A stretch of 63,588 nt of DNA, counting the filler, from Bigelowiella natans CCMP2755 (taxonomy: Eukaryota > Protista > Cercozoa): assembly GCA_000320545.1 (NCBI GenBank). It is 6 parts of 6 records of this genome, joined end to end, with 100 filler letters (N's around TTAATTAATTAA, not from the genome) between each part and the next. Parts side by side here need not be neighbours in the genome. Positions count along the whole stretch, not along the records: positions 1 to 31,859 come from ADNK01002061.1; 5 more parts are not named here. One strand, 5' to 3'. A program made the translations under genes and the position numbers. Below, piece after piece: positions 5,928 to 18,971 of this stretch (position 1 is its first letter; every line of letters begins with the position of its first letter). The notes under the pieces are model-generated. The model saw nothing but the letters and a program-made list of their open reading frames with translations, did not search any database and was not told where the DNA came from.

Positions 5928-6000
5928 GTTCCCATAGTGTAAAGGTTTATCACATTGGACTTTGAATCCGAAGATCGCCGTTCGATTCGGCGTGGGAACT
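5928..6000 (+). tRNA. tRNA-Gln(TTG)
   Basis: Acceptor GTTCCCA/TGGGAAC; anticodon arm TTGGA-CTTTGAA-TCCGA; T arm CGCCG-TTCGATT-CGGCG. Confidence 0.93.
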
Positions 6001-6005
6001 GCTTT

Positions 6006-6075
6006 GGCCTCACCAGCGGAACTGGCGCTGTGGCTTCGAACCACGGTTGGGAGGGTTCAACTCCCTCTGGGGCTT
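6006..6075 (+). tRNA. tRNA-Arg(TCG), atypical D-arm
   Basis: Acceptor GGCCTCA/TGGGGCT; anticodon arm CTGTGG-CTTCGAA-CCACGG; T arm GAGGG-TTCAACT-CCCTC; non-standard D region; ~70 nt. Confidence 0.75.
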
Positions 6076-6085
6076 CTTCATCTTC

Positions 6086-6158
6086 GGCTTTATGGTCCAG
6101 TTGGTACGGATACCCCGCTGTCTACGGGGAGACCTCGGTTCAAATCCGAGTAAAGTCG
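6086..6158 (+). tRNA. tRNA-Asp(GTC)
   Basis: Acceptor GGCTTTA/TAAAGTC, G73; anticodon arm CCCCG-CTGTCTA-CGGGG; T arm CTCGG-TTCAAAT-CCGAG. Confidence 0.88.
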
Positions 6159-6159
6159 T

Positions 6160-6232
6160 GTTCCCATGGTGTAAAGGTTTATCACATTGGACTCTGAATC
6201 CGAAGATCGCCGTTCGATTCGGCGTGGGAACT
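6160..6232 (+). tRNA. tRNA-Gln(CTG)
   Basis: Near-identical to 5928-6000; anticodon loop CTCTGAA. Confidence 0.93.
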
Positions 6233-6237
6233 GCTTT

Positions 6238-6307
6238 GGCCTCACCAGCGGAACTGGCGCTGTGGCTTCTAACCACGGTTGGGAGGGTTCAACTCCCTCT
6301 GGGGCTT
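6238..6307 (+). tRNA. tRNA-Arg(TCT), atypical D-arm
   Basis: Identical to 6006-6075 except anticodon loop CTTCTAA. Confidence 0.75.
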
Positions 6308-6317
6308 TAATATTTCA

Positions 6318-6402
6318 GCAAGCTTTCTCTAGTCTGGTCAATGAGGCGGCTCTTAAGAAGCCGTGCCGAGAGGCTTCGAGGGTTCGAATCCCTCAGCTTG
6401 CA
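6318..6402 (+). tRNA. tRNA-Leu(TAA)
   Basis: Acceptor GCAAGCT/AGCTTGC, A73; anticodon arm CGGCT-CTTAAGA-AGCCG; variable arm GCC-GAGA-GGC; T arm GAGGG-TTCGAAT-CCCTC. Confidence 0.88.
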
Positions 6403-6412
6403 TTTTTGTTTT
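6403..6412 (+). terminator. Pol III oligo-T terminator of the tRNA cluster
   Basis: TTTTTGTTTT directly after tRNA-Leu; no run of four or more T seen within the cluster. Confidence 0.7.
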
Positions 6413-14853: not shown

Positions 14854-17686
14854 GTCGTACGTGTGCCCCTCTTGCTGCAATACAAAAGTTCTTCGTTCGC
14901 CCGATGTACACAACGGTCGTTGCTTCGCTTGTCAAGAATCCAGCAAGGAAGTTCCAAGTTGTTGAGGTGCCGTGTATGTATATACAACTACTATTACTTC
15001 TTCTTCTACTACTACTACTACAACAACAACAAATACTGCAGCGAACAAAAGAATTTTATCTTAGCAGAAGCTGACAACAGGAGGGGGCGGAGGAGGAGAA
15101 TGTTGGGGATTTGTGCAGAATGATTGTGCCGAATAATGATAATTCTTACACCAACACCGCAGGTTGTTTATTTCCGTAAATGGTACGAGATGGCCACTTC
15201 AGAGCAGCAGCAAAATGCCCACAAACTGGTGAAAACCGGGCAGCTGAACTTTGCGGTAGGGGGGTGGGTCATGCCTGACGAGGCGACCGTTGATTATCCG
15301 GATTTGATCAACACGATGTCCCTTGGCCACGAATGGCTATACGACACGTTCTCCGGTGTGCGGGTGAGACACGGCTTCCAAGTCGACCCGTTTGGCGCTT
15401 CTTCAGCCTTCGCGACTTTCAGCGCCAAACTCGGTTTCGAGACCCACCTTGTCGCGCGGCTGAACTACTACGACAAGGGCTGGATGCAGGATAACAAGGA
15501 GCTCGAGTTCGTTTGGAGACCGTCCCCGTCGCTGTACGCGTCGCCTGACCGAACGGAGATCTTCACGCATATCATGGATCAGTATCAGTACTCGGCGCCT
15601 GGAATCCCAACCGAAGTGCAGCTGGCCGAGCTTTGCGCCCCCCCCCACAACCGGACAGACTGCCCCGGCGGCGGGTTCTACTGGGACGGCGACGACGGCA
15701 ATCCGAACGCGTACTGGGCGGAGAAGTGGGAGGAGCAAGGATACGCGGTCTACCCGACCGTGAACGCCAGCAACGTGGAATTCTACTCCGATTTCCTGGT
15801 GAACAACTCGATTTCGAGGTCCTCCTGGTTCGCCACAGACAACCTCCTCTGGCCGTTCGGGACCGATTTCCAGCACTTCAACTCGACGTCGATGTTCAGC
15901 AGCATGGACAAGATCATCGAGCACGTCAACGCGCGCAACGGGGCGGGGCAGCGCTACGAGGGGGTGACGCTGCAGTACAGCAGCCTCGGCGACTACTTCG
16001 AAGCTGTGAGACGCGCGAAGCCAGAGGGGTGGTCAGTCAGGCATGGGGGCGACTTCTTGCCGTATTCCACACTGAACTGCAATGGGATCTCCTCCGACCC
16101 GCTCCCCAGCCCTTGCAGCGGAAACGCCGGCCCCCAGTTTAACGTCAGCTGGCCGCAAACATGGTCAGGATTCTTCTCCTCCCACGCCCGGCTCAAGATA
16201 CAGGCCAGAAAAGCGTCGAGGGAGCTTCGGAGCGGCAGCCAGCTGCTCTCCATCGCCGCCCTGGCGAAGTTGGAGGCCGATGGCGAGCAGCTCCAGAAGC
16301 CTATCGGCGCGGTAATGGCGTCCTCCGTGCACACGCTTCGGTCTGCCGTGGGGCTCGTCCCTCACCACGACGCCCTCAGCGGCACGATGGGGTCGGGCTG
16401 CGGCAACGACCCGAAGCTGGGCTACAAGAACATCTCGACTTGCGCTGCGCTGCCGATGGGAACGCTGGGAGACGCCGGCGCCGTCGCCAACGACTACGCG
16501 GACCGTATGCTCTCAGGCGCGGCGATGGTTGCCAAGCAGACCGAGGCCGCAGCGGCGTACATCCTGGACCCGGAGTCGAAGAACAAGTCGAAAGAGGAGA
16601 AGCTGTCGCTATCGGTGGACCCCGAGCATTTCTTCGCCGCGCTTAAAGAAGGCCGCGGCGCGTCGGCTGCGGTGCATAACCCCCTCGCCTGGAAGGTCGT
16701 ATCGTGGGTCCGCGTTGACGTGCCGACAAGCATGAAAAGCGCTCGTGTGCAGGACAGTCTCGGGGCTGAAGTTCCCAGCGATATTCTGCCTGGGGGCGCA
16801 TTGGAGTGCATCGGCGATGAGCGAATCAAGGCAATGTGTCGGCTCGCTGCTACTGAGCAAGGGCTTGCACGAGGAGAAACGGCGAAGAATAGCAGGGGCG
16901 ATGATGGTGATGGCGCGAACTCCTTGTACTTCCGAGCAGAAATGCCAGCTCTTGGCGTAGCGATCTTCAATGTTTTGCCGTCGGAGCAGGACACAGCAGC
17001 AGCAGCAGCAGCAGCGTCGGTGGAGCAGCAACCCGATGCAGTGATCGAGTCGCAGTACTTCAGCTTGAAGTTCCTTGGCGGCGTTCTTAGATCGATGAAG
17101 GACCTCTCCACCGGCATCGAGATGCAAATGGAGCAGACGATGGCCGAGTACAAGTCGTTCGCCTCGGTCAAGAACGTCACGTCGCCTTCCGCGGGTGGCG
17201 CTAACTCTTGGACGCTCACGTACACAGGATCGCGCTCGGGTTCCTACCTGCTGCATCCCTCCACGCTTTCGCCTGGAGGCGTAGCTGGGGCGTTCAAAAC
17301 GCCCAAGATGGAAGTGGTGCGTGGCAGTCATGTGACGGAGGTCAGGCAATGGTTTTCAGAGACGCACTCGCAAGTGTACCGCGTTTATACGAGTGAGAGG
17401 GATGAGCTTGCTGGCGGGTTTGTGGAGCTGCAGATGGGCGTTGGGCCTTTGGAGGGAAATCGGGAGCTCGTCGCGCGGTTTGATACGGATGGGGGCATTC
17501 CAACTGATAGGTGCTGTTTTGTGTGTAGCTTAGCGTGATGGTGGCTGTGGTGGTGATGGCGGTGATGGCGGTGATGATCTCTCTAGTTGTGGTTTTTTGG
17601 GGGAGGAGGATGATGATGATGATGGTGATGATGGAAGAGGCGATTTGGTGTATTACTTCCTATTATCCTGTTTCAATATGTTTGTG

Positions 17687-17734
<48 letters not shown>

Positions 17735-18971
17735 CGCGCGCGCTCGCCCATTTTTCGAGAGAGGGGTCAACGATGTACATGATATGATCTGCTTGAAAAA
17801 GTAAGGGGGGTTTTGGGAACAGTCCATCGAAACGCTTTCACAACACTTTCACAACACTTTCCCCAACACTTTCCTCAACATCCTCAGCGGAGCGGGCAGC
17901 GAGTTCCTGACTGATAGCAACGGGTTTCAGCTCCAGCGCCGCGTGTTCAGCCCGACCCGTTTCTTCCCGGACGGCACCTCCCAAGACGTGTCACCTGACG
18001 ACTCCTACACGCTGGCGCTGAACTTCTACCCGGTGGTGAGATCCGCGCACATCCGAGGACATGACCTGCAGCTCTCTGTCCTCACACAGCAGACCGGCGG
18101 CGCAACGTCAACCAGCTCAGGAAACCTGGAGATCATGGTGCATCGGCGCTCACTCCAAGATGACAGCAAGGGGGCATGCCAGGTCTTCAACGATACGACC
18201 GGCTCATACGCTACGATTCCCCTCGACGACTCAGAGGGCAACACCTGCACGCAGTTCGGGTGGGCAGGAACCTGCCGCGCCGACAACTGCCCGTCCTTCG
18301 CGGTGCCGATGAACATCTCAACGCGAGTCGAGCCGCTGATGTGGTTCGTGGCGGGCAAGCGTTCCACGTGCCAGGGCAGGTGGAGGCAGCTCTCGCAGCT
18401 GCTCAACAACAGGCCCTCCCTGCTGTTCTCCGGGAAGGCCCACTTCGACGTCAAGGCGTCCGCGCCGATGCGCCGCGCGGCGCTCCCGCTGGATGTGCAC
18501 CTGCTGACCCTGCAGCCGCGGACGGCAGACGGCATGTCGCAGCTGGTTCTCCGCCTGCAAAACATCCAAGAGATCGCGCCGGCTTCCTCGGCCGCGAACA
18601 ACGCCAGCGGCAGCGCGAACGGGCCGATTTCCATCGACTTCAACAAGGCGGGGCTCTGCGCCTTGCTCGGCAAGCGCGCGCGTGTTTCCGAGCGGGCGCT
18701 AAACAGCCTGCCTCTTGATAAGGATGGTTATGCGAGGAATATGTTCTCTGGCGATGAAACGAAGACGTTGGATTTGGTGGGGAGCCGCGGCGGCGCCGCC
18801 GCGGAGTTCAAGAGCGACGCGACCGGGCGAATTGACGCTCATCGTCAAGCCGCAGAGGGCACACAGCAGGTGACTGGGAGTCGCCGTTTTGACACGGAAG
18901 GCCGAGCTTGTGGCTTCAAGACTGAGATCTGGCCGCAGGACATCAAAACCTTCCTCATCACCTTGGAATAG
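14527..18971 (+). CDS. Alpha-mannosidase, GH38 (lysosomal/vacuolar type), 4 exons
   Basis: Signal peptide; PHSHDDPGW, GGWVMPDEA, QVDPFG (nucleophile), PFGTDF, WSGFFSS, HHDALSGT, TDSNG, LEIMVHRR. Exons ~14527-14772, 14889-14966, 15163-17510, 17888-18971. Confidence 0.93.

Follow-up and report, generated by a model that had tools for sequence, protein, structure and literature searches.

A compact tRNA-Arg architecture without connector bases in a nuclear tRNA cluster of Bigelowiella natans and in phage tRNA clusters

Nearly all cytosolic tRNAs retain U8, base 9, and an anticodon stem of five base pairs (bp), and the exceptions, tRNA-Sec (selenocysteine), tRNA-Pyl (pyrrolysine), mitochondrial tRNAs, and allo-tRNAs, have each advanced the understanding of tRNA shape recognition by synthetases, elongation factors, and ribosomes. 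The described designs closest to the genes considered here are those of tRNA-Pyl from Methanosarcina and Desulfitobacterium, with a 6-bp anticodon stem, acceptor and D stems joined by a shortened link, a D loop of 5 nucleotides (nt), and a 3-nt variable loop, and of mammalian mitochondrial tRNA-Ser(UCN), with a 6-bp anticodon stem, a reduced connector, and a small D loop; the latter also retains the G18 G19 and T-Psi-C motifs and the L shape (PMC7609411). Allo-tRNAs, with 8/4 or 9/3 acceptor/T-stem arrangements, are likewise non-canonical cloverleaves known from metagenomes and phage tRNA clusters (PMC5389517). The subject of the present analysis is a pair of compact tRNA-Arg genes, X1 (positions 6006-6075) and X2 (6238-6307), that occupy two 70-nt gaps in a six-gene tRNA cluster of Bigelowiella natans CCMP2755, within a stretch of 63,588 nucleotides of joined genomic parts (hereafter the window). 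The contig that carries the cluster, C1676, belongs to a 91.4-Mb assembly and is B. natans nuclear DNA, as judged by an open reading frame, described below, that is 100% identical to a JGI gene model.

Sequence reading and folding placed both 70-nt elements at the coordinates, and in the fold, that the original prediction had given them, including a 4-nt variable loop and a normal T arm (Table 1). X1 and X2 differ by a single base, in the anticodon loop, which reads CTTCTAA in X2 (anticodon TCT). In both genes the acceptor stem includes two G-U pairs among its 7 bp and is abutted directly by the D hairpin CCAG / CGGAA / CTGG. They share with canonical tRNAs the 7-bp acceptor stem, a 7-nt anticodon loop with U33, a 5-bp T stem, and a TTCRA T loop; unpaired U8 and R9 and a 5-bp anticodon stem are absent, and bases 8-11 instead pair with bases 17-20 in 99.7-100% of alignment cells. 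The minimum-free-energy fold contains the 7-bp acceptor stem, the abutting CCAG/CTGG hairpin with its 5-nt loop, and a long anticodon stem, and places the T stem two bases further 5′.

The connector-less acceptor/D junction, 5-nt D loop, and 6-bp anticodon stem were upheld by pair counts among six B. natans paralogues and across an alignment of 78 sequences. In the larger alignment, 97.4% of cells pair, and double changes are seen at 21 of the 22 pairs; for the abutting D stem the paired share of cells is 99.7% (100% among the six paralogues), and the sixth anticodon-stem pair, the one beyond the canonical length, covaries (CG 41, GC 21, UA 6, AU 3). Although the paralogues fall into two types, X and Y, that are ∼30% divergent, 97.7% of their cells remain paired, with compensatory changes in every stem. 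Seven pairs changed on both sides among the six, including an A-U to G-C replacement in the abutting D stem and an anticodon stem that is nearly strand-swapped between copies; even Y1 and Y3, which are 94% identical, differ by one compensated T-stem pair. The marks of a pseudogene, broken stems, lost invariant loop bases, and copies free of constraint, were not seen in X1, X2, or Y1, in each of which all 22 pairs are intact. Judged by these substitution patterns, the non-canonical tRNA-Arg architecture is real and selected rather than a chance fold.

The paralogues are all strong matches of R1, a covariance model of the compact plan built from B. natans genes, with X1 and X2 in the seed. At least six compact tRNA-Arg genes were found at three loci, two on C1676, one on C3490 (a third X copy), and three on C274 (Y1 to Y3), with the anticodons, in that order, TCG, TCT, TCG, ACG, CCT, and ACG, all for arginine. 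After these six strong matches, the next were a partial match of 36 bits and a canonical Arg(TCG) gene; one weak match lies at C1072:9549-9603. Two of the C274 genes are called by ARAGORN as tRNA-Arg(acg), with the anticodon at position 31-32, and the third, which lies between them, has the loop TTCCTGA (CCT) on the same 70-nt plan.

Relative to tRNA-Pyl, which has one connector base and a CUA anticodon and lacks G18 G19 and the T-Psi-C motif, the compact tRNA-Arg has no connector, a 2-base linker after the D stem, a D-loop GG, a TTCRA T loop, and arginine anticodons; its variable loop, at 3-4 nt, is similarly short. Mitochondrial tRNA-Ser(UCN) serves serine in an organelle and keeps one connector base, whereas the compact genes are nuclear or phage-borne, are specific for arginine by anticodon, and keep none. 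Allo-tRNAs alter the acceptor and T stems and carry long variable arms and Sec-like D arms, whereas the compact class keeps the 7/5 arrangement and alters the core (PMC5389517). By its 6-bp anticodon stem, fewer than two connector bases, D loop of ∼5 nt, and variable loop of 3-4 nt, the compact tRNA-Arg is, in sequence and predicted fold, a variant of the compact-core plan of tRNA-Pyl and mitochondrial tRNA-Ser(UCN), without the connector and with the D- and T-loop motifs retained. Membership in tRNA-Pyl itself was rejected on the arginine anticodons, D-loop GG, T-loop TTCAA, and zero connector bases, against CUA and one connector base. The link to tRNA-Sec that had been drawn from the shared 6-bp anticodon stem fell away: the best match in the Rfam tRNA clan at E<=10 was tRNA-Sec (RF01852) itself, but at 24 bits where the cut-off is 47, and in place of its UCA anticodon, long variable arm, and 6-bp D stem, X1 and X2 have TCG or TCT, a 4-nt variable loop, and a 4-bp D stem.

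To assess the distribution of the design, a pattern drawn from the D arm and anticodon loop, which allowed only NCG and NCT anticodons, was run against three collections and matched 117 metagenome stretches, 20 viral contigs, and 53 bacterial genome stretches. R1 aligned over its full length at 45-76 bits at each of the 20 viral loci and at the majority of the metagenome loci; with a class threshold of >45 bits over the full length, X1 scored 96.5 and X2 95.2 (both seed sequences), and the independent phage and metagenome members lie between 45 and 76. Only seven of the 53 bacterial matches were true class members, the remainder being chance, and these include Mycobacterium alsense and assemblies labelled Saccharibacteria, Polyangiaceae, Acidimicrobiaceae, Acetobacteraceae, and Gloeobacterales. 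In total, 104 distinct class sequences were obtained, six of them from B. natans, and the members share a mean identity of ∼59% with the B. natans genes. The class loci are dense tRNA clusters (1118 ARAGORN calls over 191 loci) in which several compact Arg genes may stand in tandem, for example in L217, L116, L120, and L104; in the last three, the Arg genes seen with R1 are all compact or otherwise non-canonical. The class is, as far as sequence can show, widely distributed among phage tRNA clusters and infrequent in bacterial genomes, and one eukaryotic nucleus holds a small, diversified family of it. The original prediction of a novel structural class was therefore right about a real, conserved design; the design is not private to B. 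natans, since phage, metagenome, and bacterial clusters share it.

One viral match is Mycobacterium phage Tonenili, and the gene is present at 95-100% identity in 193 cluster-C (Bixzunavirus) GenBank genomes; among 25 listed records, most have no feature at the gene and a few list a tRNA-Gly there. In the Bixzunavirus Mycobacterium phage Phox, a tRNA-Arg(ccg) is annotated with odd 116-nt limits (MF919527.1, 98054-98169), and R1 scores 59.2 bits inside this feature (L284:1501-1570), which belongs to the same class as X1 but is a phage gene. The compact gene of Phox carries CCG, and its canonical Arg genes carry ACG, CCT, and TCT, so by anticodon the compact gene provides the isoacceptor that the canonical genes lack. 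Provided that phage tRNAs are used at all, the compact design would thus be in use. The roseophage DSS3_MAL1 also has an annotated tRNA-Arg with 78% identity to X1 over 55 nt. Compact genes are thus already labelled tRNA-Arg in a few GenBank phage records; no description of a compact tRNA-Arg class was found in the literature on non-canonical tRNAs, allo-tRNAs, 4-bp anticodon stems, and mycobacterial tRNA arrays, a result that is not proof of novelty, and the class seems not to have been described before.

The arginine reading of the TCG and TCT copies was borne out by the anticodons and by the D loop. Every member of the B. natans family carries an Arg anticodon, and among 40 members found by the model alone, whose anticodons the pattern had no part in selecting, 35 to 37 have Arg anticodons, two have CAT, and one has GCA. 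Three D-loop bases, G13 G14 A15, are invariant in all members (loop consensus Y-G-G-A-W), and by position they are the counterparts of G18 G19 A20. A20 is the main arginine identity element, together with C35 and U/G36 (PMC9976931). X1 and X2 combine an Arg anticodon of the class (NCG or YCT) with the invariant G-G-A in the 5-nt D loop.

As a separate observation, the compact plan occurs with CAT and GCA anticodons at L190:2622-2690, L193:2123-2191, L249:2066-2134, and L104:6677-6820, and in phage-type clusters ARAGORN also reports Ala, Trp, Thr, Met, and Gln tRNAs with a short 5′ half; the plan may not be limited to arginine.

The best reading of X1 and X2, to which a probability of about 0.6 was assigned, is that they are compact arginine tRNA genes used in B. 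natans translation, because both structure and identity were retained while the sequences diverged substantially. In this scheme, connector bases 8 and 9 would have been dropped so that the D stem begins right after the 7-bp acceptor stem, and the longer anticodon stem and moved linker would preserve the L shape in the way known from tRNA-Pyl and mammalian mitochondrial tRNA-Ser(UCN). The D-loop GG would contact the T loop, and the A that follows it, with C35 and G or U36, would confer arginine identity. RNA polymerase III would transcribe all six tRNAs as one unit that starts with tRNA-Gln(TTG) and ends at the T5 run behind tRNA-Leu(TAA), RNase P and RNase Z would cut the compact tRNAs out of the transcript, and after charging, X1 (anticodon UCG) would read CGN and X2 (UCU) would read AGR on the ribosome.

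Several points weigh against use in translation. Neither ARAGORN nor the Rfam tRNA model (RF00005, at its 29-bit gathering cut-off) calls X1 or X2; the own-genome R1 search scored 150 of 7242 candidates, so the copy numbers are lower bounds; and the alignments behind the pair counts were fitted to the R1 structure. Canonical genes cover all five Arg anticodons in B. natans (Table 1), so that on paper the compact set is not needed; the original prediction had counted canonical Arg(TCG) and Arg(TCT) genes elsewhere against itself, and both exist, on C1042 and C3379. By gene count, the compact genes form a second Arg set of roughly the same size as the canonical set recovered. In the C3490 copy one anticodon-stem pair is broken by a G-A mismatch and the T loop reads TTT in place of TTC, and Y2 and Y3 each carry a single mismatch; some B. 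natans compact copies are, by these defects, decaying. Among four sequencing runs, the one that best covers the locus has a flat, DNA-like depth over the non-genic flanks, and in a 2026 RNA sequencing (RNA-seq) run all reads over 6010-6071 carry the three variants of the C3490 copy and extend into its flank. The first mate of those reads is always on the plus strand, which in most stranded libraries denotes RNA of the other strand, so their strand is ambiguous and they may be antisense. No sense-strand mature, CCA-tailed, or charged X RNA was present in the reads, from an RNA-seq library that excludes small RNAs, so the reads speak neither for nor against such RNA.

Because of the full canonical set, the decaying copies, and the read data, an alternative stays alive in which the compact genes are inactive relics, once working and derived from a phage or bacterial source or from a deletion in a native gene, but now silent or useless, with the canonical Arg genes doing the decoding. 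The nesting of the family among phage and metagenome sequences in the tree described below also fits it. Nevertheless, this alternative is unlikely: all pairs are intact in X1, X2, and Y1 despite the X-Y divergence, a compensated change separates even the near-identical Y1 and Y3, and every anticodon change stayed within Arg. Additionally, the tRNA block is unchanged in a relative with diverged flanks. In a run from a related strain or species, position 5962 is joined to 6195, skipping 232 bases (one Gln-X-Asp unit), which leaves a three-gene cluster, Gln(TTG) - X(TCT) - Leu, in which the tRNA block including X2 is unchanged while the flanks are ∼3% different and carry indels; the relatives found in the sequencing-run index are of near-identical sequence only. 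Within the duplicated 148 nt of B. natans, two of the three differences lie in anticodons (TTG/CTG and TCG/TCT).

A different job for X1 and X2, either import into an organelle or the periplastidial compartment for use with an organellar-type arginyl-tRNA synthetase (ArgRS), or a role as processing or regulatory elements in polycistronic tRNA transcripts, is improbable. The design is common to bacterial and phage tRNAs, the two sequence types of tRNA-Gln(TTG) and tRNA-Asp(GTC) noted below hint at two tRNA sets, and the nucleomorph lacks several tRNAs, for which import is assumed (PMC6461891). Against this, import is without direct evidence, the mitochondrial genome already has trnR(tcg) and trnR(tct) (PMC4757882), and the family includes ACG and CCT in clusters that have AGG, AGA, and CGT anticodons, as is usual for cytosolic sets in eukaryotes; an element that served purely as a processing signal would need neither an Arg-only anticodon nor an invariant A20 counterpart.

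That the fold was misread is very improbable, whether X1 and X2 are taken as ordinary tRNAs (C8 C9 as connectors, 7 nt in the D loop, and 4 bp in the anticodon stem) or as a G+C-rich product of chance. One sequence alone proves little about the fold at z-scores of only -1.8 and -2.1 for the two copies, and comparative data were needed to choose because the rival D stem AGCG/CGCT is also perfect in both. However, the D stem of this canonical-like fold (10-13/21-24) is paired in 83% of cells among the paralogues and 67% among the 78 sequences, where the abutting D stem reaches 100% and 99.7%; pairs 8-20 and 9-19 vary by double changes only, and the sixth anticodon-stem pair covaries; therefore, the abutting-D-stem fold is the right one.

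Expression of X1 and X2 as parts of a larger transcript would fit the anatomy of the clusters. Spacers are 0-10 nt, and no run of four or more T occurs inside any of the three compact-gene clusters; on C1676 the T5 at 6403, directly after Leu, is the first such run after 5834, on C3490 a T6 follows eight bases after the last element, and on C274 a T5 lies ∼100 nt downstream of the last gene. The short spacers and missing internal T runs are consistent with single polymerase III units. In yeast, tRNA-Arg and tRNA-Asp genes ∼10 bp apart form a dicistron that is co-transcribed by RNA polymerase III, both being canonical. X1, which lies 10 nt upstream of tRNA-Asp(GTC), recalls this arrangement, but here there are six genes, co-transcription is predicted from the layout, and the Arg gene is non-canonical. 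The original prediction held that X1 lacks an A-box consensus and was freed from that constraint by co-transcription. The first statement was correct for C in place of T8 and otherwise overstated, since bases 9-20 of X1 (CAGCGGAACTGG) fit the A-box R-G-C-N-N-A-R-Y-N-G-G one base out of register except for that C; X1 may therefore have a promoter of its own. As to the second, the anatomy fits and promoter relief is plausible, but relief is not needed for the origin of the design because bacteria and phages share it without an A-box and X1 keeps its A-box-like motif.

In a maximum-likelihood tree of 67 columns, with the anticodon columns removed, the six B. natans genes formed one group (Shimodaira-Hasegawa-like approximate likelihood-ratio test, SH-aLRT, 91) nested within a supported clade of metagenomic ACG members. 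The grouping implies that the anticodon changes occurred in this genome, all within Arg, and it points, with the weak resolution of 67 columns, to a single origin followed by changes among ACG, TCG, TCT, and CCT. The nesting is a weak hint of uptake of the family from a phage or bacterial pool; convergence under shared constraints is a possible alternative. Transfer of the whole cluster from a phage was rejected, as the Gln, Asp, and Leu genes resemble phage-cluster tRNAs in the T loop only, and so was a viral or foreign island, as neighboring open reading frames (ORFs) have no Pfam match and G+C is flat at ∼0.41-0.47 over 1-14 kb; the exception is the window's first kilobase, at 0.54. Around the cluster itself, ORFs are sparse and G+C is ∼0.45. 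Genes present in mitochondrial DNA include trnQ(ttg), trnR(tcg), trnR(tct), trnD(gtc), and trnL(taa) (PMC4757882). A nuclear copy of mitochondrial DNA, judged by that gene list, was rejected, though not fully, on the ACG and CCT members, the ordinary nuclear flanks, and the cluster Gln genes, which presumably resemble eukaryotic cytosolic tRNA-Gln.

A broader proposal, that a widespread, undescribed, and mainly phage-borne Arg architecture was taken up by B. natans, which now runs it as a second working Arg set comprising about half of the Arg genes found, is doubtful; if it holds, a eukaryotic ArgRS, EF1A, and ribosome accept the compact design. The class itself is a further exception to the cytosolic rule, with >100 natural sequences, near-perfect covariation, and a tie to one amino acid, and spans phages of many bacterial hosts and a eukaryotic nucleus. 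For B. natans the question arises why two structurally different Arg tRNA sets coexist. As standard annotation misses the compact genes, phage and B. natans tRNA counts and codon-supply analyses are incomplete. The design could serve as a natural scaffold for engineered tRNAs and as a test case for ArgRS recognition of A20 in a five-base D loop; purely as speculation, the altered core in phages might evade host defenses that target tRNAs.

Table 1. Parts of X1, genes of the C1676 cluster, and canonical Arg genes elsewhere in the assembly. Plain coordinates are window positions.
Feature	Position	Strand	Evidence
X1 acceptor stem, 7 bp	6006-6012 with 6068-6074	+	
X1 D stem, 4 bp	6013-6016 with 6022-6025	+	
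X1 D loop, 5 nt	6017-6021	+	
X1 linker, 2 bases (CG)	6026-6027	+	
X1 anticodon stem, 6 bp	6028-6033 with 6041-6046	+	
X1 anticodon loop (CTTCGAA), anticodon TCG at 6036-6038	6034-6040	+	
X1 variable loop, 4 nt	6047-6050	+	
X1 T arm	6051-6067	+	
X1 discriminator	6075	+	
tRNA-Gln(TTG), canonical, cluster gene 1	5928-6000	+	ARAGORN; Rfam tRNA 60.9 bits
X1, compact tRNA-Arg(TCG)	6006-6075	+	Sequence, fold, pair counts, R1 96.5 bits
tRNA-Asp(GTC), "cluster type", T at position 37	6086-6158	+	ARAGORN; Rfam 55.7 bits
tRNA-Gln(CTG), duplicate of the cluster's first Gln	6160-6232	+	ARAGORN, Rfam
X2, compact tRNA-Arg(TCT), anticodon 6268-6270	6238-6307	+	Sequence, fold, R1 95.2 bits
tRNA-Leu(TAA), final cluster gene	6318-6402	+	ARAGORN; Rfam tRNA 47.5 bits
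T5 run, putative RNA polymerase III terminator of the six-gene unit	6403-6407	+	Script
Canonical Arg ACG	C1193 and C1875		Pattern search, Rfam/ARAGORN
Canonical Arg CCG	C3587		Pattern search, Rfam/ARAGORN
Canonical Arg CCT	C981		Pattern search, Rfam/ARAGORN
Canonical Arg TCG	C1042		Pattern search, Rfam/ARAGORN
Canonical Arg TCT	C3379		Pattern search, Rfam/ARAGORN

The cluster contains four ordinary tRNA genes, all on the plus strand and called by ARAGORN and Rfam, and X1 and X2 each start 5 nt 3′ of a Gln gene. The two Gln genes differ at position 9 and in the first anticodon base. A purine is the rule at tRNA position 37, where the cluster-type Asp has T. Both tRNA-Gln(TTG) and tRNA-Asp(GTC) occur in the genome in two very different sequence types, "cluster" (window 5928-6000 and 6086-6158) and "singleton" (L020:1501-1574 and L031:1501-1572), a hint that one nucleus contains two tRNA sets. 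Intact Asp genes adjoin X1 and Y1, and decayed 3′ halves of tRNA-Asp lie directly upstream of compact Arg genes at L003:1441-1500 and, in L030, between Y2 and Y3.

The C3490 cluster that holds the third X copy also contains two 68-nt tRNA-like elements on the compact plan, W1 (L003:1373-1440) and W2 (L003:1581-1648). In both, a 6-bp acceptor stem is abutted by a 4-bp D stem, 2 nt link the latter to a 6-bp anticodon stem, and the variable loop has 3 nt. The anticodon loops, CTAATAA in W1 and CTTATAA in W2, give the Ile anticodons AAT and TAT; they are the genome's only two copies of the element and are called by no program. Elsewhere, clusters on C3482 (L008, L024, L026, and L028) repeat the order Pro(TGG)-Thr-"Cys(ACA)"-Pro(AGG)-Met, in which the third gene is a high-scoring tRNA read as Cys by ARAGORN, ACA being unusual for Cys. 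Farther along the window, 15124-18971 comprises exons of a GH38 alpha-mannosidase gene, which looks like an ordinary nuclear gene; its 804-amino-acid ORF at 15124-17538 is 100% identical to JGI model Bigna1/78050, and its closest relatives, at 47-60% identity, come solely from run assemblies.
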